Positions 1,019 through 56,683 are shown, numbered from the stretch's first letter. The stretch: 64,000 bases of DNA from IMGVR_UViG_3300032268_000832:186001-250000; one strand, 5' to 3'. Program-made: numbers and translations. The notes: generated from the letters alone by a model not told the origin.

Positions 1019-1192
1019 ATGAAGAATTTTATAAAAAAATTACTTAGAGAAACCATAGATAGAATCATAAAATGTAAAAAATGTGGTTGGTCTTGGAAAG
1101 AATCTGAATCTTCAAAAGAAGATTTGTATGTTTGTCATAAATGTGGGTTTGATAATGAATCAAATTATATTGACAAAAACAAAAATAACTAG
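1019..1192 (+). CDS. 57-aa zinc-ribbon protein with IKKLLRE N-terminal motif (not in ORF track)
   Basis: manual translation MKNFIKKLLRETIDRIIKCKKCGWSW...VCHKCGFDN; ATATTTATA upstream. Confidence 0.7.
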   Translation: MKNFIKKLLRETIDRIIKCKKCGWSWKESESSKEDLYVCHKCGFDNESNYIDKNKNN

Positions 1193-1212
1193 TATATTTA
1201 ATAAAAAAAAAT

Positions 1213-1428
1213 ATGGACGATAAAATAATAAGTAGAGAACAGTCGTTGGCTGATAAAGATGTGTTGGTTGAAAAATATAAAACAGCACTTAAAAAAACAC
1301 AATTTATAAACGAAGTTAAAAACGGCCTTGGTGATGAGATTAAAAAGAACCCAAAACCTAAAGTGATTAAAAAAAGCTTCACATCAAAAATAATATCAGC
1401 AATAAAAAAAGTGTTTACTAAATTTTAA
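1213..1428 (+). CDS. hypothetical protein
   Basis: ORF track, co-oriented. Confidence 0.55.
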   Translation: MDDKIISREQSLADKDVLVEKYKTALKKTQFINEVKNGLGDEIKKNPKPKVIKKSFTSKIISAIKKVFTKF

Positions 1429-1429
1429 T

Positions 1430-1663
1430 ATGAACTTTGATAAATTAATTGAAACAGTTTCCGAAATATTCGAAAATGAGAAAATAGAAAAAAATGGTCT
1501 GGTGCTAACCTACCAATTACATCCAAAAGCCCACTTGTCGATGAACTTAGAATTACTACAAAAAACACAAGGTGTTAATACCAATTTTGAACCAGTTGAT
1601 GAATTTGAAGTTGAAATTAGTGGTATTTTAATAAAATTTGTTAAAAAAAATTACGAAGAATAA
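1430..1663 (+). CDS. hypothetical protein
   Basis: ORF track, co-oriented. Confidence 0.55.
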   Translation: MNFDKLIETVSEIFENEKIEKNGLVLTYQLHPKAHLSMNLELLQKTQGVNTNFEPVDEFEVEISGILIKFVKKNYEE

Positions 1664-1694
1664 AAAAAAGTAGTATATTTGCCAAAAATAATTA

Positions 1695-2294
1695 ATGGCA
1701 AAGACAAAGAAAATACTTGAAGACTTTGGTGATTACGATTATGTAGTCGGATTAGACGAGGTTGGTCGTGGAGCTGGCGCTGGGCCAGTTGTAACAGCAG
1801 CTGTGATAATGCCTAAGGGTTTTAAATCAGAACTAATAAGAGATAGCAAACAACTTACCGAAAAACAACGCAAAGACGCATACAAATTAATTATGGATAA
1901 TGCGATTGATGTTGTATGCGAAGCTGTCTCAGCCATTGATATCAACGAAATAGGTATCAACCCAGCAACATTCAAAGCAATGCACCTATGTTTAGATAAA
2001 CTAACCAAAACACCAGAACACATACTTGTGGATGGCACCGTATGGGAAAAATACTCAGATACGCCAGTAACAACAGTACCTAAGGGTGACGATACATACA
2101 CATGTATAGCAGCAGCTGCTATAGTAGCTAAAGTTAGACGTGATGAATACATGGGTAAAATACACAAACTACACCCACAATACGAATGGAGTGGTAATAA
2201 GGGTTATTTAAGTGCTGGACACATAGCCGCTATAAAACAATACGGCTCATGTAGGTATCATAGGACACAATATATAAAAAACTTTGTATCCTAA
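1695..2294 (+). CDS. rnhB: ribonuclease HII
   Basis: GLDEVGRG, DSKQL, LVDG, KGD and AAAAIVAKVRRD motifs. Confidence 0.95.
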   Translation: MAKTKKILEDFGDYDYVVGLDEVGRGAGAGPVVTAAVIMPKGFKSELIRDSKQLTEKQRKDAYKLIMDNAIDVVCEAVSAIDINEIGINPATFKAMHLCLDKLTKTPEHILVDGTVWEKYSDTPVTTVPKGDDTYTCIAAAAIVAKVRRDEYMGKIHKLHPQYEWSGNKGYLSAGHIAAIKQYGSCRYHRTQYIKNFVS

Positions 2295-2327
2295 ATCACT
2301 GAAAATCAACAAACAAAAAAATATTTT

Positions 2328-2380
2328 AAAAAAAGTTGCAAAAAAATTTGACACGGACTAAAAAACTTCGTATCTTTGCA
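2328..2380 (+). promoter_or_regulatory. strong host-type promoter (TTGAC...TATCTTTG)
   Basis: Bacteroidota -7 consensus TAnnTTTG; related blocks near 9118, 13057, 22780, 51895 and 53493. Confidence 0.7.
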
Positions 2381-2417
2381 TCACTGAAATAAATAATAAA
2401 CTTTAAAAACAAATATT

Positions 2418-13105: not shown

Positions 13106-13178
13106 GGTTCTATAGTATTAACGTGAATACGCCCGCCTCTAAAACGGAGAAATATCGGTTCGAGTCCGATTAGAACTA
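13106..13178 (+). tRNA. amber suppressor tRNA (anticodon CTA)
   Basis: acceptor GGTTCTA/TAGAACT, loop CTCTAAA, T arm ATCGG-TTCGAGT-CCGAT; anticodon stem only 3 bp. Confidence 0.7.
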
Positions 13179-13238
13179 CAAACACTTTACATTTTTTAGA
13201 AAAATGATATATTTATAAACAAAAAACAAATAGAACAA

Positions 13239-14463: not shown

Positions 14464-14513
14464 TAAATTAGGGCCACTGAGGCCCTTTTTTATTTTATTG
14501 AATATTTATAGGT

Positions 14514-15725
14514 ATGAAAGATACGATTAAACAATTACTTAGAGAGGCATTAGGTGTGCCAGACAATATAACAAATGTTGGTGTTGAAGTTTATAATAAA
14601 GTTTTAGATTATTTAAACCAACAACCAGCAGATATGCTTATGACTGATATTCCAAATAAAATTAAAATAACTGGTGAGTATAAAGTTGGTGATGCTGTGT
14701 TTAATAAAGTTAAACTTAAATTAAATACTAAGGTATTAAACCGTCATGACAACAATTTACCTAAAGTTTATGGTATGGCTTTTAGAAATAAAAGCGAGTT
14801 TGATGTTCAATTATTTAGAAATATTTCTGTAGGTAAAGACGGCTCTGTTTATCTATTCATTGAAATTGCAATAAACAAAACAACAACGGTAGAAGAAGTA
14901 TTAGAAGAATTTGCTAAAGAAAAGATTAAATTAACAATGGCTTTAACTCATGAGTTAAAACATGCTTACGATATGTATAAAAAGAAAGTGTCTAAAATAC
15001 ATAGAAATAGTGAATATGGTGTTTTTACCGATATGAGAACAAACATACCACCTTTGGACCAATTTATACATGATTTATATTTTACTACTAATGCTGAAAA
15101 TTTAGTTAGAGCAACAGAAGTAGCATCAAATATAGAACAAGTAGGTATCACCAAAAAACAATTTTTAAATTTTTTGGAAACTGATGACACGTATCAAAAC
15201 CTAAAAAGGATAAATTCATTCTCTTTAGATGAGTTGATAAATGAATTGAAACAACACAAAGATAGGATAATTAAGGTGTTGGATGATGCTGGGTACAAAA
15301 TACCTTCATCTGAGGATGATTTAATTAGTCTTTTATTGAAACTTACATATGAATTAATACAAAAGCGTAAATTTGAGTCTTATAAAGCCGCTGCTAGATT
15401 AAATGTCCCTTTTGTTGCTATGTTATTACAAGGTGATTCGGTTTCTAGAAAAGAAATTAAAGATTATGTTGACACTTTAAAACGATTTGATAATTATCAA
15501 CAGTTCTTCAATTATGAACAAAAAAACTTTAAAACCGTAACCGATAAGTTATTAAAGAAAATTCATAAATTATACGCTATGGCAAAAGATGATAACCAGT
15601 CAGATGTAATGCAAAAAATAAACGCTAGAACAACCAATGAATCTATTTTAGATTGGGATTTATACTACGAAGCAAATAACATAAGTGAAACAAACCCTTT
15701 TAAAAAAAATGAAGAATTTAATTAA
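14514..15725 (+). CDS. IKQLLRE-motif protein with HExxH motif
   Basis: MKDTIKQLLRE; THELKHAYD. Confidence 0.7.
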   Translation: MKDTIKQLLREALGVPDNITNVGVEVYNKVLDYLNQQPADMLMTDIPNKIKITGEYKVGDAVFNKVKLKLNTKVLNRHDNNLPKVYGMAFRNKSEFDVQLFRNISVGKDGSVYLFIEIAINKTTTVEEVLEEFAKEKIKLTMALTHELKHAYDMYKKKVSKIHRNSEYGVFTDMRTNIPPLDQFIHDLYFTTNAENLVRATEVASNIEQVGITKKQFLNFLETDDTYQNLKRINSFSLDELINELKQHKDRIIKVLDDAGYKIPSSEDDLISLLLKLTYELIQKRKFESYKAAARLNVPFVAMLLQGDSVSRKEIKDYVDTLKRFDNYQQFFNYEQKNFKTVTDKLLKKIHKLYAMAKDDNQSDVMQKINARTTNESILDWDLYYEANNISETNPFKKNEEFN

Positions 15726-17637
15726 ACAATTACTTAGAGAAAACTTACAATTGGCTGATAAGGTTTATTTCAATTCTGGGAAGTTATCACCTAGAGTTAG
15801 AGAAATAATTACACGTATCACCAATGGTGACCCATATACCAAAATAATGACTGACATCTACTATACGATGTTAACCAATAATCATAGAACTGGTGAATGG
15901 GCTCTTAAACAATTAGACCCAGAACATCAAGAAACTGAAAAACCAGAAAATGATGTGATGAGTACACCTGATTTGCAAAAATTAAGACCAATATACAACC
16001 AATTAAAAGAATACGATAAAAATGTATTCCCCATCAAAGGTTTCAACATCAATGGTGTTCAAGATACAAATGATTTAATTAGAGGGTTGATTCAGCGTGA
16101 AAAAATACTTAATATCTTTAATGAATGGCCTTCAATAGCTAAACGTAATATGAAAACTGATATTAGAACTGAAAGAGATAGCTCCCAAATGAATAGTTAT
16201 AGAGATGATTTAGAACATGCTGATGCGCATATTAGTCAGTTGAATAATAGAAACGAAGAAGCTAGAAACAGCATATTAAGAAAGATGTTTACTAACAACA
16301 CAACACTTGATGATGTATTGGATTTTGTACAAGAGAAAGAAAACTTACTTGGTGGTGTTGACTTAACTAGAAAACAAATAGGACAAATACTTAAACATGA
16401 TAAAGAAAACTATGACGAATTAAAAGTTAAATATAATAAAGGTAACATAATGATTATTGAAGTTTCTGGTCCAAATGGGATAAAAGAAATTGGTTGTAAT
16501 TCTCTTTGGTGTTTTACTTATAATAGAAAAGGTGGTTCTACTAATTGGGAAGATTGGTCTAGGAATTCAACTAACGGATATTGTTATATAATAATAGATT
16601 TTTCAGAGCCTTCAGATTCTGAATTGTTTATGCATGTCCTTACAAAACCACTTAGATATGATTATTCAGATTATGGTGAAACTGGTGATGAAAGACTTTA
16701 TACTATGTCAAACAGAGATATTCATGATGACGATGAGGACTATGGTAGAAGTGTTAACGAATACATAGAGTACCTAATTGATTTACCAACTGCAATGAAA
16801 GTAATGAACTTTGGAGTAAAAAAACCAAAAGAAAAAAAGAAAAAACAAAAATTCGTTGACCCTAACCAGTTATCATTAGATTTAAACGAAGTAAAAAATA
16901 CACTCAGAGAAGGTTTGATAACTGAAGCTCTTTACAATATAGACGATGATGTAGATTTAATTTATGATAATTTTTTTGCTGAGGATTTAGATACATTACT
17001 TAAAACTAGAAAATTAAATAATAGTATGTTTTATAACACAATTATAAGCACTAGTATTTTAAGTAATCCATTATGTGTTAAAGCAAATGAAATAAACCCT
17101 TGTAAAATATTAATTAACTTTGACAACAATATTTATAACCCAAACACTAAAACAATTTCAATTACAGCATCTAAAAGAGCGTTAGAATTTATAAAAGATA
17201 ACAATAATGATTTTGATAAAGCTTTAGATAATTTAGAATGGGATGATGCTAAAAAAATAAAATCAGATTTATCGGAAGAAAAAATCAAAGGTTCTATACA
17301 TCATGAATTAACACATTGGTTAGATGATACGTTTAACAACAATAGAATAAAAAGAGCTGTTGATAAATTCATCAAAAAAAATAAAAAAGTTGGTAGAAAT
17401 AACATACCAATTGATGCTGATACTTTAGAAATACAAGCACAAATACATAATATTCATCAATTAAAAAGAAAATATCAAGATGTTTGGGATAATTTAACTT
17501 TTAATGAAATGATGAATATGTCAGTAACGATTAGAGTTGTTTACAATAATTTACCTTTAAAATATAGAAACAGATGGGTTCGAGATTTAAAAACTAGAAT
17601 GTATCGTGAAGGCTTGTTAGGTAAAAATATGTATTAA
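15709..17637 (+). CDS. IKQLLRE-motif two-module protein with HExxH motif
   Basis: MKNLIKQLLRE; internal VKNTLREGLITE; HHELTH. Confidence 0.7.
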   Translation: MKNLIKQLLRENLQLADKVYFNSGKLSPRVREIITRITNGDPYTKIMTDIYYTMLTNNHRTGEWALKQLDPEHQETEKPENDVMSTPDLQKLRPIYNQLKEYDKNVFPIKGFNINGVQDTNDLIRGLIQREKILNIFNEWPSIAKRNMKTDIRTERDSSQMNSYRDDLEHADAHISQLNNRNEEARNSILRKMFTNNTTLDDVLDFVQEKENLLGGVDLTRKQIGQILKHDKENYDELKVKYNKGNIMIIEVSGPNGIKEIGCNSLWCFTYNRKGGSTNWEDWSRNSTNGYCYIIIDFSEPSDSELFMHVLTKPLRYDYSDYGETGDERLYTMSNRDIHDDDEDYGRSVNEYIEYLIDLPTAMKVMNFGVKKPKEKKKKQKFVDPNQLSLDLNEVKNTLREGLITEALYNIDDDVDLIYDNFFAEDLDTLLKTRKLNNSMFYNTIISTSILSNPLCVKANEINPCKILINFDNNIYNPNTKTISITASKRALEFIKDNNNDFDKALDNLEWDDAKKIKSDLSEEKIKGSIHHELTHWLDDTFNNNRIKRAVDKFIKKNKKVGRNNIPIDADTLEIQAQIHNIHQLKRKYQDVWDNLTFNEMMNMSVTIRVVYNNLPLKYRNRWVRDLKTRMYREGLLGKNMY

Positions 17638-40332: not shown

Positions 40333-40369
40333 ACCTTTACTAATTTCCTTGGGTTTCATATAATTGTGT

Positions 40370-41740: not shown

Positions 41741-43383
41741 TAGTTGGCGTATCCTGTATTAACAATATAATAATTTGAACTTCCACCAGACACTGGGGAA
41801 TTTATAACAATAGATTGAACACCAGAATAGGTGGTTTTTAAATTACTATTTGATGAGTTTATTATAGAAAATTGGGTCGGTGTGAATATCCTAGTGTTAA
41901 CCAAAGTTGGTTTCCACGAAGTAAATTTACCTATTTTTTTAGCGTAAATATAATAAACGTCTGAAATGTTTATTTTAGAATCATCATTAACATCAAATTT
42001 ATAATAATCCCAAGCATTTATATTTCTACTTAAAACCTTAGAGTTTGCTGAAATAGCGTCAAAAGTTGTTATAGCGTTAGGTGTTGGTGCATCAATTTGA
42101 ATATACCATTCTATTGATGGGTTAGTAGTTTCTGTGATAGTATATTTTCCATTAGAATCTGTGTATATTGTTTTATATAACTCCCATGAACCTGTGCTAA
42201 ATATATAATCAAATTCCAAGACATAATTTAAAGAATTGTTATTATTTAAATCATTCCAACGACCACTACCAACAAACTGAATATAATCTTCACCACCAGA
42301 ATTGTTAGGTTCACCACCATTCCAATTAGAATAAGGATAAACACCAAATCTCCATGCTGTTGACATGTAATTACGATTCATCTCATCAGCTGTAAGAGCG
42401 TTAGAATATACTTGAAAACTACCTAATCTAAAATTACCATAAGCGCCAGAACCCATGTTTGTAAAATCGGTTAACCCAATACCATAATATAAACCATTTC
42501 CGTAATAATATGGTGCTTGTCTAGCTGTATTTATAGTAGCAAAAGCAACACCATCTTTATAACCAGTAAGTGTTGTTCCATCGTAAGTAAAACCAACTAA
42601 ATGCCAAGCGTTTAATGTTATACTAGTAGAAACTTGTACCATTCCACCGTTCCAAAGCCCACATCTAAGTGTGTTACCACCAGTTATTTCTATTTGTGCG
42701 TCGTGCCAACCAGATGATGGGCTACCAGCACCTAATTCAGTTACAACAACACCATTTCCAGTTGGATAAATCCACGCTAATAATGAAACTTTAGTTGATG
42801 TAAATTTTGAGGCTAAATTACCCGTAATACCATATTGGTTAATACCGTTGAATGTTAAGTATTTACCACCACTATTAGTATATGTAGGGTTGTTTGTTAA
42901 TGTAGTGTTAATACTAGATTTAATATCTGTTAGTATATTTCCTGATGTGTAGGACGCTACATCATAATCAGCTTGTTGGTTTGTGGTGACATAATTTTCT
43001 GTCCATCTCCACCCAGCATTTGGTTCCCCATAAAAATTACCTGTTTTGTCTTGATAATATCCTATCCATCCACTAGGCCATGTGTTAAAAACAAAGGTAT
43101 TTTCAGCAGCGTTAGAAATTGTCACTAAATGACCATTCATAGCTACACAGTTAGCTTGGGCTGTAGTCCAATTAGCGGTGGTTGTTGAACGATAATATGA
43201 ATGACCGTTATAATTTGTTTGTGAAGTAAATCCAGCTAAATTTGACGTTGTTCTTTTAAAAAGTTTTATAGGTATATTAGGAATACCTACACTATTTGAG
43301 TTGTAGATATAACCAGAATAATTAAATTGACCAAATAATTGGTTAGTCAATAATAATATGAATACCACTAACTTTTTCATCAT
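41740..43383 (-). CDS. secreted protein with C-type lectin, LamG and dockerin-like domains
   Basis: YNGHSYY..CVAMNGHLVTI, WNGGEPNN..WNDL; WHLVGFTYDG; DVNDDSKINISD. Confidence 0.8.
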   Translation of the reverse strand: MMKKLVVFILLLTNQLFGQFNYSGYIYNSNSVGIPNIPIKLFKRTTSNLAGFTSQTNYNGHSYYRSTTTANWTTAQANCVAMNGHLVTISNAAENTFVFNTWPSGWIGYYQDKTGNFYGEPNAGWRWTENYVTTNQQADYDVASYTSGNILTDIKSSINTTLTNNPTYTNSGGKYLTFNGINQYGITGNLASKFTSTKVSLLAWIYPTGNGVVVTELGAGSPSSGWHDAQIEITGGNTLRCGLWNGGMVQVSTSITLNAWHLVGFTYDGTTLTGYKDGVAFATINTARQAPYYYGNGLYYGIGLTDFTNMGSGAYGNFRLGSFQVYSNALTADEMNRNYMSTAWRFGVYPYSNWNGGEPNNSGGEDYIQFVGSGRWNDLNNNNSLNYVLEFDYIFSTGSWELYKTIYTDSNGKYTITETTNPSIEWYIQIDAPTPNAITTFDAISANSKVLSRNINAWDYYKFDVNDDSKINISDVYYIYAKKIGKFTSWKPTLVNTRIFTPTQFSIINSSNSNLKTTYSGVQSIVINSPVSGGSSNYYIVNTGYAN

Positions 43384-43829
43384 ATTTTAGAAATAGCGTC
43401 TTGTAAGGCTTTTTTTAACGCACCAGAAAAAGCTGATTTTTCGAAAGGTAGGGTTTCATCTTGTAATTCAATAAATGTTGAACTAACATCAGTATTTGTA
43501 TCACCTTCACCTTCATATTCATCACCATCTATTTTTACTATTAATTTAACTGTTGTTTTTTTTCTTTTTTTCTCAAAAGGACCTAAAGACACACTATTGG
43601 TTGGTGCTTCAATACTTTCAATTAAAACACTAACAGGTTTCCCATCTTGACAAATAGAATAACTATTAGAAAGAATTTCTTCGGTAATTTGTTTTACACC
43701 TAGCAAAAATCTATTAGGGTTCACTCCTTCAATTTCACCTTCGTTTTTAACATCTTTAACTGAATAACATTCTTGAGAATATCCTCTTAAAGAAATAAAT
43801 ATTGTTAATATAATTAAAATTTTTTTCAT
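43380..43829 (-). CDS. secreted hypothetical protein
   Basis: signal peptide. Confidence 0.65.
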   Translation of the reverse strand: MKKILIILTIFISLRGYSQECYSVKDVKNEGEIEGVNPNRFLLGVKQITEEILSNSYSICQDGKPVSVLIESIEAPTNSVSLGPFEKKRKKTTVKLIVKIDGDEYEGEGDTNTDVSSTFIELQDETLPFEKSAFSGALKKALQDAISKI

Positions 43830-43834
43830 ATGTA

Positions 43835-45232
43835 TTATAATATTGCTTTTGCTCCTGTTAAAATTTGGTAAGATAACGGTTTATCATTTATTTGTTGAAC
43901 ACCGCTTATACTTATATTTAACTTGAATTTTTTTGTTATTTTATAATCAGCTGATACAAAAGGTATTGCTAACAATCCTGAATTATACCACATACCTTGA
44001 TAATAGTAAACATATGGTGAATAAACAGCAACAAACATAGTTGTTAATTTTATTTTTTTATTTAATTTAAAATCACTATAAACACCACCTAACATTGAAA
44101 TACTTTTAAATCTAGATTCACCTAAATTCCCAGTTGTTAAATTAACACCAATTGTTGATGTTACTTTACGATACTTATATGATTCCATAAAAGAAATAGT
44201 GTTGAAAAAGTCTTTATCAAAATTCAACATAGTTGAATTAGCCAGTATACTGGTAAATTTCTTATGTCTATATGAAACAAACAAAGTTATGTTTGAATTA
44301 TTAATATAACTCGTAAAATTAACTAACACACCTTTAGCGAATGTGTTTTTAGTGTTTGATGAAACAATACTAGCGTTTAATTTAAACTGACTAGGGTCGG
44401 CCCCATCTGCACTACCTATAACAACGACATCACCATTCATCATTAGATTACCTTTTTTCGCTCCAGCTACTTTACTTTTTGTCGTAGATGAAGATTGAGA
44501 AGAAGATACTAACGCGTTATTAGCTTGTTCTTTATTTTTTTCTGAAGTTTCTGATTTTTCAGTATTGTCTAACCTTACAGAATTAACACCTCCTGTAATA
44601 TTACTTATGGGTGTTTGACTTTCTTGTGTTCCTGTTGTAGTTGTGCTAGTCTGAGTTGGATTAGTAGTTCCTTCATTTCCACTATTTGTTCCAGTTCCAT
44701 TATTAGAGGTATTATTTCCGTTGGTAACTGGTGTTTTTTTATCTCCGTTACTATTTCCTGTATTTCCGATAGAATTGGTCCCATTTTTATTATCTTTTTT
44801 TTCTTCATTGTTATTTGCTGAAACCTTCTCGTCAGCTTCAACAATCCCTGAAATTGTTGAACCACCACTTATGGCTTCCATGTCACTTAAAATAGACAAA
44901 ACACTGGTCACCACAGCTATATTGTTTTGCGCAATTAAAACATTCATAGTGGTATCTAAGGTTAAACCAACACCACTACATGGACCTGCTGGGTTTTGAG
45001 AATTTACAGTATTAATCCAATCTTGAAAAACACCCGATTGTAATTCAGCATCAGTAAATGAACGTACTTGGCCGTTATAAGTTACTGGTACCGAACCAGA
45101 AGATGTATCAATATAGATTTGTTTAGTTTTAGAGGTGCAAGGGTCGGTATAAGAATACATAAACCCTTGCGCCACAGCTAAAACCGATGTGAATAATAAT
45201 AAAATTGTATATATAAATTTATTAACATTCAT
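43835..45232 (-). CDS. secreted protein with Asn/Thr-rich linker and C-terminal beta-barrel-like region
   Basis: signal peptide, low-complexity linker, alternating beta pattern. Confidence 0.65.
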   Translation of the reverse strand: MNVNKFIYTILLLFTSVLAVAQGFMYSYTDPCTSKTKQIYIDTSSGSVPVTYNGQVRSFTDAELQSGVFQDWINTVNSQNPAGPCSGVGLTLDTTMNVLIAQNNIAVVTSVLSILSDMEAISGGSTISGIVEADEKVSANNNEEKKDNKNGTNSIGNTGNSNGDKKTPVTNGNNTSNNGTGTNSGNEGTTNPTQTSTTTTGTQESQTPISNITGGVNSVRLDNTEKSETSEKNKEQANNALVSSSQSSSTTKSKVAGAKKGNLMMNGDVVVIGSADGADPSQFKLNASIVSSNTKNTFAKGVLVNFTSYINNSNITLFVSYRHKKFTSILANSTMLNFDKDFFNTISFMESYKYRKVTSTIGVNLTTGNLGESRFKSISMLGGVYSDFKLNKKIKLTTMFVAVYSPYVYYYQGMWYNSGLLAIPFVSADYKITKKFKLNISISGVQQINDKPLSYQILTGAKAIL

Positions 45233-45237
45233 TTTAA

Positions 45238-45588
45238 TTAATTTTCAGTTGTACTTGACATAGAAATTCCGTCTTCTTCATCAACTTTTTGGATAAGCAT
45301 TTTATCTCTATCTTCTGAGTTAAACCAATAGTCAACAACTTTGTTTAAGTTACCAACAAAAGCACCTAATAAGATAAGTAACATTTCTTTCCAATCTTCA
45401 TTAATAGTAGCGCCAAAAAAAACACCAGCGTTAATCCCTAATATAATCATTGTAAATAAACCTAACACAATTGCTGTAATTTTCCAACGATTATTTTGCA
45501 TTTCAACAAGCATATAATAGAATCTATTTTTTTCATCTATTTTTTTTGGTATTTCTTTACCTGTTATCATTTGTTTTAATTTGTTCAT
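45238..45588 (-). CDS. two-TM membrane protein
   Basis: hydrophobic helices. Confidence 0.6.
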   Translation of the reverse strand: MNKLKQMITGKEIPKKIDEKNRFYYMLVEMQNNRWKITAIVLGLFTMIILGINAGVFFGATINEDWKEMLLILLGAFVGNLNKVVDYWFNSEDRDKMLIQKVDEEDGISMSSTTEN

Positions 45589-45591
45589 TTT

Positions 45592-46296
45592 TTAATTTTT
45601 AAATATTCCATTTTTTATTAATTTTGAAATTACCCTAGAAGCAGCTGTTTCTAAGGCTTTTTTTGTTGATATACCGATTGTTGATTGATTAAATTTAATT
45701 TCATCCACACCATCTAATAACGAAGATGTTTTTACAGTTGAAGCTTCACCTAATCCACTACCAGTATAAATTTCACCAGTTTCAGCATCTACAAATCTAA
45801 CTTGTAATCCTAATCTAGTTGTTTGTGTTGTTTTAGAACCATCTGTTAGTTTAACCTCTTCATCTTCTGATACACTGAAGTCATATACTTCAATATAAAC
45901 AAAGAATTTTGCTAAAATGACATTACCCTTCACTTCTATTTTATTTGATGAAATACCCTTATCTGAAGCTTTATCTTGAGCTATCATTTTTTGTTTTATT
46001 TCATTTTTATCTTCAGTAAATTTGAATCTGTCTGTTGTTTCTAAGAACTCTAAAACAATATTTGCAACCCCAAGTCCAACACGTTTGTCTTTTAACTCTG
46101 GGTACATTTCATATAATTCCTCGTTGATACCTATTTTAAGTACTTGAACTGGAATAGCCTCACCTTCATAGCCACTAACTACATCAAGTGATTGTTTCTT
46201 TTCAAAATCAGCCTTATAATCCTCGGTCTTTACAGTGCCAATTTGACCGTAAAGACCGAAAGATGATAATAATAAGGTTAAAAGCAATTTTTTCAT
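45592..46296 (-). CDS. CsgG-like protein
   Basis: LETTDRF, VYDFS, LQVRFVDAETGEI. Confidence 0.7.
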   Translation of the reverse strand: MKKLLLTLLLSSFGLYGQIGTVKTEDYKADFEKKQSLDVVSGYEGEAIPVQVLKIGINEELYEMYPELKDKRVGLGVANIVLEFLETTDRFKFTEDKNEIKQKMIAQDKASDKGISSNKIEVKGNVILAKFFVYIEVYDFSVSEDEEVKLTDGSKTTQTTRLGLQVRFVDAETGEIYTGSGLGEASTVKTSSLLDGVDEIKFNQSTIGISTKKALETAASRVISKLIKNGIFKN

Positions 46297-46297
46297 A

Positions 46298-46612
46298 TTA
46301 CCAAGGGTCCTCTTCTGTTTTTTTAGGAGCGGGTGCTGGAGCTGCTACTGGCGCAGCAACTGAAGTTTTTTGGTTATTAGTATTATTACTTTGTTGTTTT
46401 TGTTGGTTGGTATTGTTATTAGATAAATTGATAACAACAGGAGCAGCTGCTGGAGCTGCTTGTTCTGTTTTTGTTTCTTCTTTATCTTCACCTTCACCAC
46501 CAAATAAATGAGTAGACACCCAAATACCTGCACCACCAATTACAGTGGTTAATGTTCCTAGGATAGTTTTTTTAAGACCTGACCATCCTTCTTCTGTTTT
46601 GTTTTCTTCCAT
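46298..46612 (-). CDS. single-TM protein with Ala/Pro-rich tail
   Basis: ORF track. Confidence 0.6.
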   Translation of the reverse strand: MEENKTEEGWSGLKKTILGTLTTVIGGAGIWVSTHLFGGEGEDKEETKTEQAAPAAAPVVINLSNNNTNQQKQQSNNTNNQKTSVAAPVAAPAPAPKKTEEDPW

Positions 46613-46618
46613 TTTTTT

Positions 46619-48511
46619 TTAATATTTAGCAATTTTATCAGTTTCAATTTTACTTATAGTATTTAATTTAGCAATATATAACCCACTAGCTAAAGAAGAT
46701 AAGTTAGTAGAATAAACATATTGACCCTTAGCCATATATTTGTTTATTATAGTAAATACTTTTCTTCCCGCTACATCGAACAAACATAGTTCAGTTTCAC
46801 CGCTTTTATCTACTTTAAAATTTACAAATACATCACCATTTGTTGGGTTAGGATAAACAATCATATCACCAGTGATAAATGTTTGATTACCAATTTTATT
46901 GATTTCAACAACACCATTGGTAGGTACAATATTCATATCTGAAGAAGTTTCGTTTCCTACAAATTTTCTAGATGTGTATAATGGACTAGAGTTCCATTCG
47001 CTTTGTGGTGATTTAGCTGTAAAATATAATGTGAAAAGAGTTTCCCCGTCTTCAACAAAGTTATTATTACTAGCATCATAACCACCCCACTCAATAACAT
47101 CATCATGAGGGTTAACAAAACTTAACCATGACATTGCTTTTTGTGAGTTTCTTACTTCATTAAATTCTAATAAATTAGAATCATAATATAAAGCTAATTG
47201 TAGAGAACCTAATTTATTATTACCAGTAAGTGTTTTAACAGGTATTTCAACCATATTACCTTCACTCACAGTTAAACTAGGTAAATTAATTTCAACTGTT
47301 GGTAAAGGTCTATCATACTCAACTTTTTCATCAATAACATAACTAGAAGCATTAGCTGGGTTATTAATTTCAATAGGTGTTAAACGAGCCATATGATAAC
47401 CAGTTCTATTTGCGTCACCAGTAACCATAACATAATATGTTATACTAGTTTCACCAAAAGGTATTTCATATGTAAAGTCAGTAACACCAGCAATACTTGA
47501 AGTCATGTTTGTGTTAGGTGAACCCATAACAGTAGTGTATTCACTAGATGTAAAGAATTTAATATTGTTTACACCATTTGGCCATACGCTAAATCTACCA
47601 GAGATTTTACCAAAAACACCATAAGCATCAGATATTGTAATGTTATTGTTACCATTTACGTCAGCAGCGTAAAAATCAAAATCACTTGGTTGTCCAGTAC
47701 CTAACACCCATTGATTAATTTGCTGTGCATCCGCAACTGAAATAACGTTACCAACATCCATAGTACCACCGTTTACAACTAATCTTATATCATAAAACGT
47801 AGCGTCAATTTGCTCATTAATAGCATAAGAACCGTTTAAATCAGTAAGATAATTGTTAACTAAAGTCCATGGACCGCCAGTTTTAAGTTTTTTCTCTAAT
47901 GAGAATGGTAAATTTTTAGCTGGAGTATCGTTTACGTTCACAAAATTTGCTGTGTAAGTAAAAGTTTGTCTTAAGAAGTTACCACCATAATTGTGAAGTG
48001 ATAACACTAAGTCATTACCAGCTTGGTCAGCACCCATTTGAGGAAAAGTTTGAACACCAGTCCATGTTAAGTTTCCAATAGACGGCAAAGAATCAAAAGT
48101 TCCAGCAGCAACATGGGTAAAAGCAATATTAAACAAATTACCGATTGGTAATGTGTATGTACTATCACTACCTGTGTATACTACAGTTATAGTTACGTAA
48201 CCATTAGCATTGTTATCAACAAATTGTAAATCTAAATTGGTTGTAGAACCAATTAAAGATACAGCTGCTGATGAAAATGCTGTTTTATCATAAAACACTC
48301 TAAATTGAAGACCTGTAACTAACGAAGTAGTTGTATTAGCATAGGTTAATTTAGTGTTAGTAACACCTTGTACACTAGTACCAACGGTATAGTTCGTGTC
48401 AATTAAAACCCAAACACCGTTAGACGGTGCAACAGGTTCTTGTGCGAAAGTTGGTGTTATGAAACTAAATAATAGTAACGCAACACTAACTAATTTTTTA
48501 ATGTTTTTCAT
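46619..48511 (-). CDS. secreted cohesin/dockerin-like protein with type IX secretion C-terminal sorting domain
   Basis: signal peptide; DVNGNNNITISD; VYPNPT..FDVAGR..LASGLYIAKL. Confidence 0.8.
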   Translation of the reverse strand: MKNIKKLVSVALLLFSFITPTFAQEPVAPSNGVWVLIDTNYTVGTSVQGVTNTKLTYANTTTSLVTGLQFRVFYDKTAFSSAAVSLIGSTTNLDLQFVDNNANGYVTITVVYTGSDSTYTLPIGNLFNIAFTHVAAGTFDSLPSIGNLTWTGVQTFPQMGADQAGNDLVLSLHNYGGNFLRQTFTYTANFVNVNDTPAKNLPFSLEKKLKTGGPWTLVNNYLTDLNGSYAINEQIDATFYDIRLVVNGGTMDVGNVISVADAQQINQWVLGTGQPSDFDFYAADVNGNNNITISDAYGVFGKISGRFSVWPNGVNNIKFFTSSEYTTVMGSPNTNMTSSIAGVTDFTYEIPFGETSITYYVMVTGDANRTGYHMARLTPIEINNPANASSYVIDEKVEYDRPLPTVEINLPSLTVSEGNMVEIPVKTLTGNNKLGSLQLALYYDSNLLEFNEVRNSQKAMSWLSFVNPHDDVIEWGGYDASNNNFVEDGETLFTLYFTAKSPQSEWNSSPLYTSRKFVGNETSSDMNIVPTNGVVEINKIGNQTFITGDMIVYPNPTNGDVFVNFKVDKSGETELCLFDVAGRKVFTIINKYMAKGQYVYSTNLSSLASGLYIAKLNTISKIETDKIAKY

Positions 48512-48520
48512 TTTTCCGTT

Positions 48521-48769
48521 TTAAGCTTCGTTTGAGTTGTCTTTGTTAGATTTACCAAAAACTTTGTCAACCGATGCTAAACCTAGACATCCGAATGATA
48601 ACATTGCGACAGCATTAACTAATGTGTCAGAAGGTTTGATATCACCATGTGAATAACTATTTACGAACATTGTTGCACATAAAGTTAATCCAGCGATGAT
48701 TCCAACAAACCTTTTTGATGAGAAATTTCCTGTCTCATCTTGGAAAATTTGTGTAAAGAATTTTTTCAT
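48521..48769 (-). CDS. small two-TM protein (holin-like)
   Basis: SSKRFVG and two hydrophobic helices. Confidence 0.5.
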   Translation of the reverse strand: MKKFFTQIFQDETGNFSSKRFVGIIAGLTLCATMFVNSYSHGDIKPSDTLVNAVAMLSFGCLGLASVDKVFGKSNKDNSNEA

Positions 48770-48905
48770 TTTTTTTAATTTTATTCTTTTGTTATTTTTT
48801 TGATGAAACATTTGCTTTCGCTTAAATATAAATATTGAAAAAAAGTTTAAAAAAAATCTTTATTTAAAAAAAAAGTAGTATCTTTGCATAAAATTATTTA
48901 ATGCG

Positions 48906-51215: not shown

Positions 51216-51265
51216 AAATATATTAGAGTTTTTGTATTTTGTAAATATTTATAAATAAAAAAAAT

Positions 51266-51853
51266 ATGAAAGACTTTATAAAAAATAGACTTAGAGAATC
51301 TTTAGAACATGAAGAAGATTTACAAGAAATAAATTGGAAAGGATTAGCCGCTGGTGCTGCTATGACGTTGGGTACGTTAGGTGCGCAAGGACAAACGACA
51401 GAACCAACTACACAAACACAAACACCAACAACTCAAACAACACAACAAAAACCAATGTTCGGTACACCAGAACAAAGAGCTGCTGCTAAGGCTAAAAGAG
51501 AAGCTCAACGTAAAAAGAATTTTGATATTTCTGTAAATAATGCTTATGGAATGGGATTTGTTGAAGATATTGAAGAAGAAGAATTTAACACTGGTTGTAA
51601 CATAGCCAATAATCAAGAATTAAAATATTTAGATGGTTCATCACCTGAATTCCCTAATTTTGTATATAGAGAAATGGAAGATGGTACCAAAGTTAAGATT
51701 AATATGAAAAAATATCTTAATTATATTAGAAAACAAAATAAACAAGCTGATGTGCCTTTAGATGGTTTACAAGGTCCTAATTTTAAATCAACAAAATGTG
51801 GTGTTTCTAAAGATGCTGCAAAACAAAGCAAAAGCGATTGGAGTAAAAAATAA
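51266..51853 (+). CDS. IKNRLRE-motif protein
   Basis: MKDFIKNRLRE; hydrophobic segment then Thr/Gln-rich linker. Confidence 0.65.
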   Translation: MKDFIKNRLRESLEHEEDLQEINWKGLAAGAAMTLGTLGAQGQTTEPTTQTQTPTTQTTQQKPMFGTPEQRAAAKAKREAQRKKNFDISVNNAYGMGFVEDIEEEEFNTGCNIANNQELKYLDGSSPEFPNFVYREMEDGTKVKINMKKYLNYIRKQNKQADVPLDGLQGPNFKSTKCGVSKDAAKQSKSDWSKK

Positions 51854-52634: not shown

Positions 52635-52723
52635 GGGACTATGGTGTAGTTGGTTAAACATCCCATCCTTACAAGATGGAGACGAGAAGTATAACGCTGG
52701 TTCGAATCCAGCTAGTCCTACCA
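52635..52723 (+). tRNA. tRNA-Val(TAC) with 16-nt variable region
   Basis: CCATC-CTTACAA-GATGG; encoded CCA. Confidence 0.8.
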
Positions 52724-53172: not shown

Positions 53173-53201
53173 CAAATTGAAATATCAACATATTTATTAG
53201 T

Positions 53202-53483
53202 ATGAAAACACTAATAAAACAATTGTTAAGAGAAAACATACTTGAATTACCAGATTACGCTGTTATTGAAATTACAATACCAATAGCATACATGGACCCT
53301 AAGTATTATTATCAAGCTGTACCAATAAATCAGTTGGATTCTGATAGGATATACATTTGGAAAGGTGCTGCTGGTGGTAAATCAATATCAACCAAGAGTG
53401 TTAGAGTATTAAAAACATTCAAATACAACGAAAAAGATGAAATGGACGTTTATCTTAATCAATTGAGAAACAACGAAATATAA
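53202..53483 (+). CDS. IKQLLRE-motif protein
   Basis: MKTLIKQLLRE; ATATTTATT upstream. Confidence 0.65.
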   Translation: MKTLIKQLLRENILELPDYAVIEITIPIAYMDPKYYYQAVPINQLDSDRIYIWKGAAGGKSISTKSVRVLKTFKYNEKDEMDVYLNQLRNNEI

Positions 53484-53856: not shown

Positions 53857-53865
53857 CAAAAAAAT

Positions 53866-53940
53866 GGCCCCGTCTTCTAAACGGAATAGGAAGCCACCCT
53901 TTCAAGGTGTGTAATGCGAGTTCGAGTCTCGTCAGGGCTA
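53866..53940 (+). tRNA. tRNA-Glu(TTC)
   Basis: CACC-CTTTCAA-GGTG. Confidence 0.85.
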
Positions 53941-53977
53941 CAATCTGGTTAAGATTCCAGTAATCAAAAATCTAAAT

Positions 53978-54050
53978 GGTCTATTCGTCTAGTCGGTCAG
54001 GACGTGCCCCTTTCACGGGTAAAACACGGGTTCGAATCCCGTATAGACTA
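53978..54050 (+). tRNA. tRNA-Glu(TTC)
   Basis: TGCCC-CTTTCAC-GGGTA. Confidence 0.9.
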
Positions 54051-54059
54051 CAATAAAAA

Positions 54060-54131
54060 GGTCCTATCGTTCATCGGCTAGGATGCCTCCCTGTCACGGA
54101 GGTGAGGAGGGTTCGATTCCCTCTAGGACCG
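54060..54131 (+). tRNA. tRNA-Asp(GTC)
   Basis: CCTCC-CTGTCAC-GGAGG. Confidence 0.9.
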
Positions 54132-54215
54132 CTGGTAACATCTGGTAATTTTAATACCAGTAAAAACCATTAAAAACAGGGATTATTAGTTTTATCTGGT
54201 AATGTCTGGTAATTT

Positions 54216-54287
54216 GGGGTCATAGCTCAACGGCTGAGCGCTTCCCTTGCACGGAAGAGGATGTGGGTTCGAATCCCATTGGCTCCA
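54216..54287 (+). tRNA. tRNA-Ala(TGC)
   Basis: CTTCC-CTTGCAC-GGAAG; G3-U70. Confidence 0.9.
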
Positions 54288-54340
54288 CTAATTAGTTTCT
54301 ATCTTTTTAATTTTTAAAGATATTTATAGATAAAAAAAGT

Positions 54341-56683
54341 ATGAAATTATCACATATATTCAAGGATTTGTTAAATGAGGATTTTAAAACTCAAACACAG
54401 AAATTCATCTCTCAAGGTTATGAACCAGAAATTGTTAGGTCGTATATTGAAAAATTTAAATATATTAGAGATGGTAAGTATCGTGAGGCGCTTAACCCTG
54501 ACTTAAACATCAACGTTCCAGTTGAAAAACGATTTGATATTGATGCGTACCCAACGTTTAATTCTCTTGAAACCCTAGTTGATTATGTGTCAGGTCAAAG
54601 ACCAGTTAAAACCACTATGTCAAAACAAAATGATATTGAAGTTACTGGTGAAGCTGTTTATAACAAAGATGGTGTTGAAGTATTTTATGCTGACAATCCA
54701 AGAGCGTGTATTAAATATAAGGGTAGTATGCCATATAGTTGGTGTGTTGCTAGGTCAGATTCTTCAAACATGTTCTATACATACAGATTTAAACCATATG
54801 AACCAGCTTTTTATTTTGTTAAGGATGTAAAAGCTACTGAAAAAGAATTGGCAGATATTGCTAAAACTGGTACTGTTAGTGGTGGTTTTAAAAATAGATA
54901 TCATTTCTTTGTTATTCAAGTACCTAAAAACCTTAACCCTGAAGATGACAACACCCCACAATACATAGTTACTTCAGCTAACAATGACGGGGATAATCAA
55001 TTAAGTTGGAATCAAATTCTAGAAATAAACCCAAAATTAGCTGCTATAAAAAATGTATTGATTCCTAAACCTTTTACACCACAAGAAAGGGCGCAACATG
55101 AAAGGTTTAAAAAGGGTATAAATGATAATGAATTTAGGAAACTTAGTTACGAAGATAAGAAAGCTTATTTGGATATATACCCAACAATTGCTAAACCAAT
55201 TACAACTAATCAATTTTTGATATTACCAGACGATTTAAAGAATCTATATGTTTCATTTGGTATTGGATTAGACGATGAACAATTTGATAGTATTAAAAAC
55301 AACCCTAAATTACTTAAGCGTTATGTACAAATTAGTGATAGAAAGTTAGATGTTTATTTAAAAGCTGATAATTGGAATAGAACTAGTTATCGTATGATGT
55401 ATACTGAATTGATAGTACTTCCAGAGGAAAAAATATCAGAATACTTAAACACTTTAAATAAAAAAGAAATTGGTAGTTTTATTGCGAATAACGGTGTTGA
55501 TAAATTAGAAATGCTAGAGAAACTTGCTTCTGGTAAATTGGTTGGTAATTATTCTGATATTAAACCGATAATTGATGGTTTAAGAAAAAATAGTGGAATT
55601 AGATATAGAAGCAAATATAATGAAGAAACAGATGTAATAGAACTGTTAAACGAAATGCTTCCAGATAGTGTATCTGTTGAATATGGTGAATATTCAAATG
55701 AAATTATGTTTGAACTTTCTTCCGAAATAAAATTTGGTTATGATTTAGAAGGTGTTTTATCCAGCTTATCACAAGATAGTTGGGATTCATGGAATGATAG
55801 TTATTTTGATGGTTGGTCTGAAGGACTTAAAGAAGAATACGAAAACCAAATAGAATCAGTACTTAAAGACCAAAATTTAGTTAATGATTTAAGAAAAAAT
55901 GGTATAAACCCAACACCAAAAATAGTAGAAACGTTATTAGAAAAATTTAATGCGAGTGAAAAAATAAAAGAACACATTGATGAAGTTTATACTGAAGCTC
56001 AATCTGTTAGTGAAAATCGAATATTTAGAGAGTTACATAATAAATTTACAAAGATAATAACTTACGAGAATAGTAATAGCGGTGGTTATTATGGTTCTAG
56101 TAGAAGAAATTTTACTGAGGTTACTATAAATATATCTAATTTTATTGGTGCTTTAATTTCAGATTCTGACATATTAACAAAAGATAAAACACAATTTGAA
56201 AGCGCTTTTGAATCATTATTAGAAGACTTATTAGAACAAGCCGATTTACCTACAACTCAAGAAGAGATAGACGAAGAAGTTAGAAATGGTGGTGTAGATA
56301 TTGATAATGAAGCTATGAGTAACTACATAAAGGAAAAAATATATGAGATTATAGATGAAAAAATTTATAATAATGACGATGAATATAATGACGAAGAACG
56401 TGAAGAAATAAAAAAAACAAAATATGATATTCTTACAGCTTTTGAAAAAACACTTAAAGGGTTAGGTCAAGATGAAAATACTAATGAAATAGAAAATGAT
56501 TTAGTTCGTATTGTATTTGATAGAAGTAAAATTAAAACCAATGGGTCGATTTATACCTCTGTTATTCATAAGAAAGATAATAGTACTTTTAATGGTTATA
56601 TGTTTATTAATGACATCCCATCTTATTTTAAAAACTACAAATTATTTGAAGAAATAAAAAAAATGAAAAATTTAATCAATTAA
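54341..56683 (+). CDS. large hypothetical protein (FKDLLNE N-terminal motif)
   Basis: 780-aa ORF; YSWCV segment resembles SLWCF of the 15709 gene. Confidence 0.75.
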   Translation: MKLSHIFKDLLNEDFKTQTQKFISQGYEPEIVRSYIEKFKYIRDGKYREALNPDLNINVPVEKRFDIDAYPTFNSLETLVDYVSGQRPVKTTMSKQNDIEVTGEAVYNKDGVEVFYADNPRACIKYKGSMPYSWCVARSDSSNMFYTYRFKPYEPAFYFVKDVKATEKELADIAKTGTVSGGFKNRYHFFVIQVPKNLNPEDDNTPQYIVTSANNDGDNQLSWNQILEINPKLAAIKNVLIPKPFTPQERAQHERFKKGINDNEFRKLSYEDKKAYLDIYPTIAKPITTNQFLILPDDLKNLYVSFGIGLDDEQFDSIKNNPKLLKRYVQISDRKLDVYLKADNWNRTSYRMMYTELIVLPEEKISEYLNTLNKKEIGSFIANNGVDKLEMLEKLASGKLVGNYSDIKPIIDGLRKNSGIRYRSKYNEETDVIELLNEMLPDSVSVEYGEYSNEIMFELSSEIKFGYDLEGVLSSLSQDSWDSWNDSYFDGWSEGLKEEYENQIESVLKDQNLVNDLRKNGINPTPKIVETLLEKFNASEKIKEHIDEVYTEAQSVSENRIFRELHNKFTKIITYENSNSGGYYGSSRRNFTEVTINISNFIGALISDSDILTKDKTQFESAFESLLEDLLEQADLPTTQEEIDEEVRNGGVDIDNEAMSNYIKEKIYEIIDEKIYNNDDEYNDEEREEIKKTKYDILTAFEKTLKGLGQDENTNEIENDLVRIVFDRSKIKTNGSIYTSVIHKKDNSTFNGYMFINDIPSYFKNYKLFEEIKKMKNLIN

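Follow-up and report, generated by a model that had tools for sequence, protein, structure and literature searches.

A candidate portable capsid-targeting leader shared by unrelated proteins, tRNA-end enzymes among them, in an uncultured T4-like phage

Many unrelated proteins of a 306-kb uncultured T4-like phage genome begin with the same short leader, residues 1-11 following the consensus M-K-x-φ-I-K-x-L-L-R-E (in its fuller form M-K-x-φ-I-K-(K/Q)-L-L-R-E), and the sequence evidence indicates that this is probably a portable leader for capsid targeting and cleavage, comparable in kind to those of T4 internal proteins. In the window, i.e. the 64,000-nucleotide stretch analysed (IMGVR_UViG_3300032268_000832, 186001 to 250000), a regular expression finds nine copies, compared with none in each of 200 shuffles, and in a six-frame scan each of the nine stands at the very start (residue 1) of an ORF. 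Seven further copies outside the window bring the genome total to 16, all beginning at Met1 with a conserved block of residues 1-11(14); the tagged set in this genome is counted here as 16-18 proteins. When the N-termini of 384 ORFs are clustered without bias, the leader group comes out as the single dominant cluster, separate from the cluster of true signal peptides. A Sec, Tat or lipoprotein signal peptide was considered and rejected: such a peptide needs, behind its basic N-region, a hydrophobic stretch of some 10 residues or more, whereas the leader is interrupted by K6, K7, R10 and E11. Hydrophobic conservation continues past the presumed cut (L13), and similarity among the tagged proteins ends at about residue 14.

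Translation bears out nine of the ten positions at which the original prediction placed a leader (coordinates are those of the window, all features on the plus strand). The ORF at 1019-1192 (57 aa, leader MKNFIKKLLRE at 1019-1051) is zinc-ribbon-like (CxxC..CxxC), and its family is tagged in many relatives. Directly downstream of a terminator-like hairpin (14470-14486), a transcription unit opens with the ORF at 14514-15725 (403 aa), in which the leader MKDTIKQLLRE is followed by a conserved ALGVP and the protein has an invariant HExxH (H146, E147, H150). The next, at 15709-17637 (642 aa, MKNLIKQLLRE), is made of two modules, the C-terminal one (HHELTHW) occurring as a stand-alone tagged gene in other phages; an internal leader copy had also been proposed here, and it is present at the module junction (residues 391-401, 16879-16911) in a degenerate form, DLNEVKNTLRE, which keeps L-R-E. 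Pfam confirms the identity of the CCA-adding enzyme at 17675-18847 (390 aa, MKTQIKQILRE), which has tagged orthologues in relatives and whose homology to solved CCA enzymes begins only at about residue 24-37, and likewise that of the enzyme at 27762-28700 (312 aa, MKKEIRTILRE), a polynucleotide-kinase-like P-loop domain joined to a 2H (two HxT) cyclic phosphodiesterase, hereafter kinase-CPD. The ORF at 26249-27043 (264 aa) starts MKKYIKNLLRE, and that at 27046-27723 (225 aa) has the variant MKDFIKQKLSE, its relatives showing the canonical LLRE; the latter had been called kinase-like, a label the databases do not sustain, giving only PHROG 4301, a family without assigned function. Two further ORFs, at 51266-51853 (195 aa, MKDFIKNRLRE, with an orthologue in a complete relative, G002) and 53202-53483 (93 aa, MKTLIKQLLRE), complete the nine. 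The tenth, a 780-aa ORF at 54341-56683, is a doubtful member, as its weak variant MKLSHIFKDLLNED falls below the PSSM threshold, yet retains L-x-E (L-N-E at residues 11-13).

The genome encodes a T4-type head machinery. A Peptidase_S77 gene (PF03420, 88 bits) matches the T4 gp21 structure 5JBL at 1e-15 and has both the catalytic His and Ser motifs (ELDHP, GVSSRG), the capsid protein is gp23-like (PF07068), and the head genes run in the order terminase-portal-protease-scaffold-capsid. The capsid maturation site SLLTE↓A (arrows mark known or presumed cuts) aligns with SFLTE↓A of T4 and QIVSE↓A of immuto, and the acidic gp22-like scaffold starts MADKKSILEE↓ALLD. Of the genomes with the tag and a completeness of 77% or more, 6/6 encode the S77 protease. 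Three tagged genes lie less than 5 kb downstream of the capsid gene, in this genome and in relatives.

As had been claimed, a common motif precedes most of the listed genes: the promoter-like ATATTTAT stands 4-15 nt upstream in 6/10, namely 13 nt 5' of the ATG at 1019 (998-1005), 51266 (51245-51252) and 54341 (54320-54327), 4 nt 5' of those at 14514 (14502-14509) and 53202 (53190-53197), and 15 nt 5' of that at 26249 (26226-26233). It precedes 10/17 tag carriers, the others sitting downstream within the same units, and is enriched ahead of tagged genes (OR 6.1, P = 0.002). It is also found ahead of the terminase, protease and scaffold genes, but since it occurs in addition upstream of a DnaB-like helicase gene and abuts the DNA polymerase start, it is no clean 'late' marker; ATATTTAT is a phage promoter-like motif common to, but not exclusive to, head genes. 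The two RNA enzymes have a different context. The CCA gene is preceded by TATCTTTG (17663-17670) with TTTG 19 nt upstream (17640), and the kinase-CPD gene by TATATTTG (27750-27757) with TTTG 20 nt upstream (27726), an arrangement also seen before the kinase-CPD gene of G002. Both we take, on the consensus of Bacteroides promoters, to be host-type promoter-like sites of the Bacteroidota sigma-A type (-7/-33).

The leader extends across a clade. In 220 stretches of related IMG/VR phage DNA there are 233 non-identical tagged ORFs falling into at least 68 BLAST-unrelated families. E11 is conserved in 134/134, L9 in 132/134 (Ile in the rest) and R10 in 125/134. Among 116 full-length kinase-CPD orthologues, 111 start with the leader, and in the remaining five it begins a few residues later or a different start was called; I5, I8, L9, R10 and E11 show zero entropy, the leader being as invariant as the P-loop. 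Across the clade's tagged ORFs I5 and K6, which lie well away from the scissile bond, match the cleavage site itself in conservation. This suggests an additional binding function; conservation of I5, K6 and L13 is greater than a cleavage site would need. A database search found no phage record carrying a tagged family, and the tag is absent from cultured relatives.

Exposure to a protease that cuts after (L/I)xE should be visible in the bodies of the tagged proteins as well as at their junctions. Computed by family, the observed/expected ratio of [LI]xE is 0.88 in tagged bodies (95% interval 0.76-1.01) and 1.17 in the 707 families that lack the tag (P = 0.0002), and that of the longer [LI][LI]xE is 0.66 against 1.08 (P = 0.008), the families in this test being BLAST-defined. 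The depletion is modest, about 25% in relative terms. It is absent from tagged bodies for [AG]xE and for all six controls ([LI]xD, [LI]xQ, [LI]xK, [LI]xN, [FYW]xE and the reverse Ex[LI]), and T4 departs in the same direction (0.70 for the packaged IPs and Alt, vs 1.28). Leader length ranges from 4 to 41 residues among 142 homologues of ORF 14514 (26-58% identity), while at the junction P1 is Glu in 139/142, P3 is Leu or Ile in 124/142 and P2 is free; E11 is invariant across 73 diverged homologues. E11 and P3 could in this family belong to the fold rather than to a cleavage site. The structure model of ORF 14514 (pLDDT 92.6, no fold match in the PDB) shows the leader as a helix of residues 2-12. 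Unlike the T4 sites compared, the presumed P1' is often not small (N, G, S and A, also R, F and E). The depletion and the junction conservation, two tests independent of each other, fit exposure of the tagged proteins to a T4-type prohead protease.

These data suggest a common route. The leader would form an amphipathic helix that draws unrelated proteins into the assembling prohead core, and the phage's prohead protease, a gp21-family Peptidase S77, would subsequently remove it by cleavage behind the invariant Glu (L-R-E↓x). Given such leader-directed entry and cleavage, the tagged proteins, 16-18 in this genome and from at least 68 families clade-wide, would be packaged, and probably ejected, cargo. 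Scaffold-core binding, cleavage at E11, presence in the virion and ejection are the steps that we infer. What was originally proposed, a portable T4-type leader removed at (I/L)xE, gains support as a reading of sequence from independent features: the gp21-family protease, the gp23-like capsid protein with its T4-type maturation site, the invariant LxE ending, the spread over families, the motif avoidance and the junction.

Could the similarity instead reflect descent, or the DNA itself? That the tagged proteins are paralogues with a common ancestral N-terminal domain is hardly credible: some do form families, e.g. the zinc-ribbon family with 23 members, but the 68 families have no BLAST similarity between bodies, which include a class II nucleotidyltransferase, a P-loop kinase with 2H domain and HExxH proteins, similarity fades out near residue 14, and in homologues from cellular organisms and from other phages the first 16-30 residues have no counterpart. 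It is very unlikely that conservation acts mainly on the nucleic acid, as a 5' coding translation-initiation element in a Shine-Dalgarno-poor host or as a block of recombination homology. The Leu9 codon is CTT in 11/15 copies here and in 52% clade-wide vs a genome-wide background of 16%, a hint of some influence of the nucleotide sequence or of descent, and leader copies turn up also where modules join and at two C-termini, places where recombination joints would be expected. Yet synonymous variation is free at I5 (ATA/ATT), L8, L9, R10 (AGA/AGG) and E11 (GAA/GAG), and since L9, R10 and E11 are kept through changing codons, selection is on the peptide; moreover the motif is in frame and begins at residue 1 throughout, the sequence context upstream of leaders is of three different kinds, and the motif avoidance in bodies would be unexplained. 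Recombination at conserved leaders has been proposed for the T4 IP genes too, so it is compatible with a capsid-targeting leader.

Two protein-level readings account for more of the data. One holds that the leader is solely a propeptide or processing signal, cut by S77 or another protease, e.g. to activate or time enzymes, without packaging or ejection. The invariant (L/I)-x-E, the conserved junction and the motif avoidance are evidence for exposure to a Glu-specific protease rather than for encapsidation, and the RNA enzymes have early-type promoters. We nevertheless regard it as unlikely: gp21 of T4 is active only within assembled proheads, I5 and K6 suggest the further binding function noted above, and tagged genes cluster with head genes. 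The other makes the leader an amphipathic-helix tag for localisation or assembly at a non-capsid target (membrane, replication or translation factory, chaperone or unfoldase), L-x-E being incidental. The consensus has a high computed hydrophobic moment and is rich in Lys/Arg, the leader is helical in the ORF 14514 model, and its carriers include cytoplasm-acting enzymes with early-type promoters. This too is improbable, as it leaves unexplained a depletion specific to (L/I)xE that spares (L/I)xD, K and Q, the (L/I)-x-E ends of 14514-family leaders that differ in sequence and length, and the match to the LLRE of T4 gp24.

If the leader is indeed capsid-targeting, its presence on two RNA enzymes raises the question of delivery. 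The further claim that tRNA repair enzymes may be injected with the genome is weaker than the reading of the leader itself, and carries caveats. The Rnl1-like ligase (T4 Rnl1-type, 29888-31012), needed to complete repair, has no leader; about 26/28 phage tRNA genes do not encode CCA, which gives its addition a housekeeping purpose; both enzymes have the host-type promoter-like sites; and in G002 the tag of the CCA orthologue has decayed, LKK replacing LRE with loss of the invariant Glu. Dual use would be most likely, the CCA and kinase-CPD enzymes being expressed early, driven by host-type promoters, to mature and heal tRNAs, and also late, when a share may be packaged. A more sweeping proposal, which we advance only tentatively from the sequences, is that in a widespread clade of T4-like phages of aquatic bacteria, with genomes of about 300-370 kb, a single 11-residue leader may load dozens of enzymes (CCA-adding, RNA 5'-kinase/2',3'-cyclic phosphodiesterase, HExxH peptidase-like) into the capsid, to be delivered with the DNA. 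If so, it would be the first case of tRNA maturation and repair being carried within virions, and the leader would provide a sequence-only read-out of the 'ejected proteome' in uncultured phages.

The T4 proteins IPI, IPII, IPIII and Alt carry a capsid-targeting leader (CTS) that is removed by the prohead protease gp21, and both CTS function and the prohead core context of gp21 have been described (PMC3012670). The leader reported here resembles the T4 CTS in being short (about 10-11 residues), in starting from Met1, often with MK, in ending (L/I)-x-E and in standing on otherwise unrelated proteins, and the two phages have in common a gp21-family protease, a gp22-like scaffold, a gp23-like capsid protein, the same type of maturation site and cargo bodies that avoid the cleavage motif. 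T4 records give the leaders MKTYQEFIAE↓A (IPII/IPIII), MLKEQLIAE↓A (gp22) and MAKINELLRE↓S (gp24). Compared with the first of these, MKxφIK(K/Q)LLRE has only MK and φ-x-E in common, is borne by far more proteins (16-18 per genome, and no fewer than 68 clade families) and is followed by conserved hydrophobics past the presumed cut (L13). Likewise T4 cargo consists of small anti-restriction proteins and an ADP-ribosyltransferase, whereas the tagged proteins here include RNA-end-healing and CCA-adding enzymes and HExxH proteins. Closest is the gp24 propeptide, of 10 residues rather than 11, whose last four residues, LLRE, are identical and which also has an Ile five to six residues ahead of the Glu; its T4 carrier is a capsid shell protein, whereas this genome has no leader-bearing gp24 homologue, the extra gp23-like matches being short fragments only.

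In phiKZ-like phages cuts fall at S/A/G-x-E and the propeptides are long and non-conserved, no common short leader being known, whereas here P3 is Leu/Ile and the leader is a fixed 11-mer. Such giants, e.g. SPN3US, are described as packing numerous proteins that a T4-related prohead protease trims at the N-terminus by cutting after a Glu (PMC7411985, PMC10052503). A polyvalent protein of phages or conjugative elements is a single chain that unites two to fifteen disparate effector domains (Iyer et al. 2017, PMC5512222), and the idea of diverse effectors, zincin-like peptidases included, delivered with invading DNA is alike; here most of the domains are encoded by genes of their own and bear individual leaders, and two-module fusions are few. 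Assignment to that class was rejected, most carriers being single-module and 15709 a two-module fusion. ORF 14514, which has no hit in a Pfam search, gives feature-level leads to the LPD23, LPD1 and zincin clusters, with atlas scores under the evidence level. Relative to T4, what differs is the consensus, the far larger number of carriers, and RNA-enzyme and HExxH proteins as candidate cargo.

The 11-residue leader (MKxφIKxLLRE) heads nine of the ten ORFs for which the original prediction had listed variants, the proteins starting M-K-x-x-I-(K/R)-x-(L/I/K/R)-L-(R/S)-E, while the tenth, ORF 54341 (ORFs are named by their window start), carries a weak look-alike only. In a six-frame scan it stands at residue 1 of an ORF in every instance, its regular expression matches nine times in the window and never in 200 shuffles, 16 copies are present in the whole genome, and unsupervised clustering of the first 18 residues of 384 candidate ORFs returns the leader group as the single dominant cluster. 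The predicted internal copy in the 15709 protein is likewise present (DLNEVKNTLRE, residues 391-401), at the joint of two modules, the second of which other phages encode as a separate gene bearing a leader of its own. Leader-like sequence is also seen at the C-terminal end of two ORFs (genome 16260, plus strand, KAFIKNMLRENFK; genome 32001, minus strand, KKLIKKLIRENLGF) and inside a 255-aa ORF (genome 32654, minus strand) downstream of the short promoter-like motif ATATTTAT; such C-terminal and internal copies are probably left over from module fusions or lie at their joints. Two smaller groups share other N-terminal leaders, class B (MKxxIIxTE(S/T)Q(Y/F); genome 27110, 115486 and 120037) and class C (MR(K/R)xDKxKNxxKxNxLxEQRYL; genome 116558, 117232 and window 20203-20802), each containing (I/L)-x-E and each downstream of ATATTTAT. 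Class B, which resembles T4 Alt (MELITE...), is also found at the start of remote homologues of ORF 14514.

Scanning IMG/VR with a degenerate DNA pattern of the leader yielded at least 117 stretches; the Q7 subset by itself gave 72. The 220 stretches listed (2.5 Mb, including this genome and G002, a complete 362-kb relative) contain 233 non-identical tagged ORFs in at least 68 families, the bodies of which have no BLAST similarity to each other. Their logo is M1 K2 x φ4 I5 K6 (K/Q)7 L8 L9 R10 E11 x L13, with E11 kept in 134/134 and L9 in 132/134. Codon choice is free at I5, L8, L9, R10 and E11 while the residues are fixed, indicating that selection acts on the peptide. Full-length orthologues of the kinase-CPD, a polynucleotide-kinase-like P-loop protein with a 2H cyclic phosphodiesterase (68-99% identical, n=116), show zero entropy at the leader positions, as at the P-loop; 111 of the 116 have the leader at the start, and the remaining five have it a few residues inward or have a different called start. 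In the proposed comparison with untagged homologues, relatives outside the clade lack the leader: alignment to solved CCA enzymes begins at about residue 24-37 of the phage CCA-adding enzyme (ORF 17675), and to untagged Streptomyces phage polynucleotide kinases at residue 18-29 of the kinase-CPD. The strict DNA pattern was not found in Flavobacterium phage immuto, huge phage LR756508 or T4, and the exact consensus thus belongs to this clade alone. We call the clade abundant on the basis of thousands of protease and kinase homologues in metagenomes, Tara Oceans data included. Pfam and PHROGs gave nothing for the other carriers except PHROG 4301, and a tblastn search of 50,697 phage records with a tagged family of 112 aa gave no match.

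The junction between leader and body is best resolved in the family of ORF 14514 (window 14514-15725), for which a full scan of 1.8 billion representatives gave 483 homologues (clusters at 50% identity). Among the best 150 of these (26-58% identical), the body starts x-L-G-V-P in 142, preceded by leaders of 4-41 residues and several sequence types. Directly ahead of the body, however, the sequence still reads (L/I)-x-E, with Glu at P1, the residue before the presumed cut, in 139/142, Leu or Ile at P3 in 124/142, and P2 free. E11 is invariant in this family to the same degree as the HExxH motif (HELKH), itself invariant, as is the HExxH (HHELTHW) of the C-terminal module of the 15709 protein (window 15709-17637). 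The AlphaFold model of ORF 14514 is very confident (pLDDT 92.6) and has no PDB match (Foldseek E-values >0.1); its highest VIA Z is 3.9, with scattered zincin peptidases at Z 3.3-3.8, not significant, and the protein may represent a new zincin-like family widespread in phage metagenomes.

The source record (306,463 bp, G+C 31%, CheckV completeness 86%), of which the window covers bases 186001-250000, has a head module in T4 gene order: a T4-type large terminase, a portal-sized gene, a prohead protease, an acidic scaffold-like protein and a 609-aa gp23-family capsid protein, whose closest cultured relatives are Flavobacterium phage immuto (39% identity) and Microcystis phage Mel-JY01. The protease (genome 53563-54288) belongs to the Peptidase_S77 (gp21) family (88 bits), matches the T4 gp21 structure 5JBL (E = 1e-15) with the ELDHP and GVSSRG motifs kept, and is present in all six tag-bearing genomes at least 77% complete. 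The first 5 kb downstream of the capsid gene contain three tagged genes, an arrangement also seen in relatives. A 152-aa ORF (window 40364-40822, plus strand) repeats 44 residues of the capsid protein (383-426) at 55% identity, an ORF at genome about 278.3-278.9 kb ends like the capsid protein N-terminal delta domain (KWEASGLLEG...YEAQAKQFLK), and G002 has a comparable fragment derived from the capsid protein. Such pieces could act as decoys or offer another way of docking onto the prohead. The only minus-strand block of the window, 41309-48811, where the GC skew flips, encodes proteins with signal-peptide-like N-termini (e.g. 43835-45232 and 46619-48511). Membership of the 'moraphages' (PMC12619734) is not supported: size and T4-like core agree, but HSP70 is absent from the genome.

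Were tagged proteins to share a prohead with a working (L/I)-x-E protease, one would expect this motif to be avoided in their bodies. The observed/expected ratio of [LI]xE is 0.88 (95% 0.76-1.01) in the 68 tagged families, compared with 1.17 for the 707 untagged families of the same stretches (P = 0.0002, resampling at family level), and that of [LI][LI]xE is 0.66 against 1.08 (P = 0.008). No depletion is seen in six controls ([LI]xD, [LI]xQ, [LI]xK, [LI]xN, [FYW]xE and the reversed motif) or in [AG]xE, and [LI]xD is even enriched in tagged bodies. In T4, mature IPI, IPII and IPIII contain no [LI]xE at all, and the packaged set including Alt has a ratio of 0.70 against 1.28 for 67 other ORFs.

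Removal of a capsid targeting sequence (CTS) by gp21 at (L/I)-x-E is well established for T4. The diverse T4 internal proteins have only this CTS in common, and it puts them into the scaffolding core (PMC3012670). The leader would act as a CTS of this type, placing its carriers in the prohead, where the protease, which like gp21 may depend on the prohead for its activity, would then cut it off at (L/I)-x-E. The original proposal of a portable T4-like packaging tag is partly supported by the unrelated carrier families, the (L/I)-x-E end, the S77 protease and the T4-like head; packaging and cleavage themselves we infer, and we consider this mechanism reasonably likely. When the protease was modelled in complex with residues 1-30 of the tagged kinase, the prediction scored 0.00, which speaks neither for nor against binding. 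A signal for processing only would account for the protease evidence, but does not say why I5 and K6 are conserved or why tagged genes are linked to head genes. Were the leader instead a helix for localisation elsewhere than the capsid, neither the avoidance of one specific motif nor the conserved junction would be explained.

Common ancestry of the carriers is excluded by their Pfam domains and by the 68 families of dissimilar bodies. An element acting at the nucleic acid level is contradicted by synonymous variation, although CTT encodes Leu9 in 11 of the 15 copies here and in 52% clade-wide, against 16% of Leu codons genome-wide (Leu8 is the usual TTA), and copies lie at module joints and two C-termini. 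This bias and these positions suggest that leaders also mark recombination joints.

ATATTTAT is strongly intergenic, with 62 of 86 same-strand copies within the 8% non-coding DNA, and stands 13-20 nt ahead of many ORFs, the terminase, protease and scaffold genes among them; it is over-represented ahead of tagged genes (OR 6.1, P = 0.002). It is a promoter-like phage motif common to head genes. Its reading as a clean late promoter is weakened by further copies, one ahead of a DnaB-like helicase and one abutting the start of the DNA polymerase. Upstream of some genes are promoter-like sites of the form TTTG, 19-20 nt, TAnnTTTG, which we take to be the Bacteroidota host-type consensus, and these point to a putative Bacteroidota host. 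A scan for E. coli-type promoters gave 81 sites against 81.6 expected, the E. coli consensus being uninformative here.

The leader on the CCA enzyme and the kinase-CPD had led to the suggestion that tRNA repair enzymes are injected. Both genes are the last of two ATATTTAT units, with no terminator predicted before them within those units, and each has its own host-type promoter-like site. The adjoining T4 Rnl1-type ligase is untagged, and the CCA orthologue of G002 reads MKTIIKEILKKNL, with the Glu missing. Only about 2 of the 28 window tRNA genes (26118-26204 and 52635-52723; the genes span 9587-58508) encode the 3' CCA, so phage tRNAs depend on a CCA-adding enzyme in an ordinary maturation role. 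Because of these caveats of expression, ligase, CCA and G002, injection is possible but far from shown, and we regard virion delivery of these enzymes as rather doubtful. The 28 tRNA genes include two with suppressor-type anticodons, CTA (reads TAG) and TCA (reads TGA), at window 13106-13179 and 53866-53941, and one called with a four-base anticodon; this odd set also covers 58432-58508. Long ORFs are intact under table 11 (coding 85% from ORFs of at least 100 aa), so no recoding is seen in the genome itself. Downstream of the kinase-CPD lies an untagged nucleic-acid-end toolkit (window 28657-39610): NUDIX, Rnl1-type RNA ligase, HNH-HTH endonuclease, ATP-dependent DNA ligase, Rnl2-type RNA ligase and a PARP-like ADP-ribosyltransferase domain protein (38321-39610).

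Should the leader act as the T4 CTS does, sequence alone would be enough to list the proteins that many uncultured jumbo phages package and probably inject. Most of the approximately 68 cargo families have no known function and would be leading candidates for factors that take over the host in the first minute or counter its defences, the leader would be a second, independent packaging tag for putting foreign proteins into phage heads, and tRNA-end repair enzymes carried by the virion would counter tRNA-targeting defences in a new way. The scarcity of (L/I)xE in cargo offers a general signature that can be tested, and it could serve to pick out head proteins exposed to the protease in other T4-like phages.

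A full-text search on leader strings such as KKLLRE and KQLLRE found no mention of the leader in the literature. The T4 record gives, with the cut shown as a slash, MKTYQEFIAE/A for IPII and IPIII, MLKEQLIAE/A for gp22, MAKINELLRE/S for gp24 and ...SFLTE/A for gp23. The leader here has the same length, MK start and L-R-E end, LLRE being common to gp24, and the phage's own capsid protein reads ...SLLTE/A at the position aligned with the gp23 site. The scaffold begins MADKKSILEE/ALLD and a core-position gene MQNFGKIKNAFSEIIAE/G. New here are a different and very strongly conserved consensus, its scale (16-18 carriers per genome, at least 68 families), the types of cargo, and its occurrence in an abundant clade of uncultured jumbo phages.
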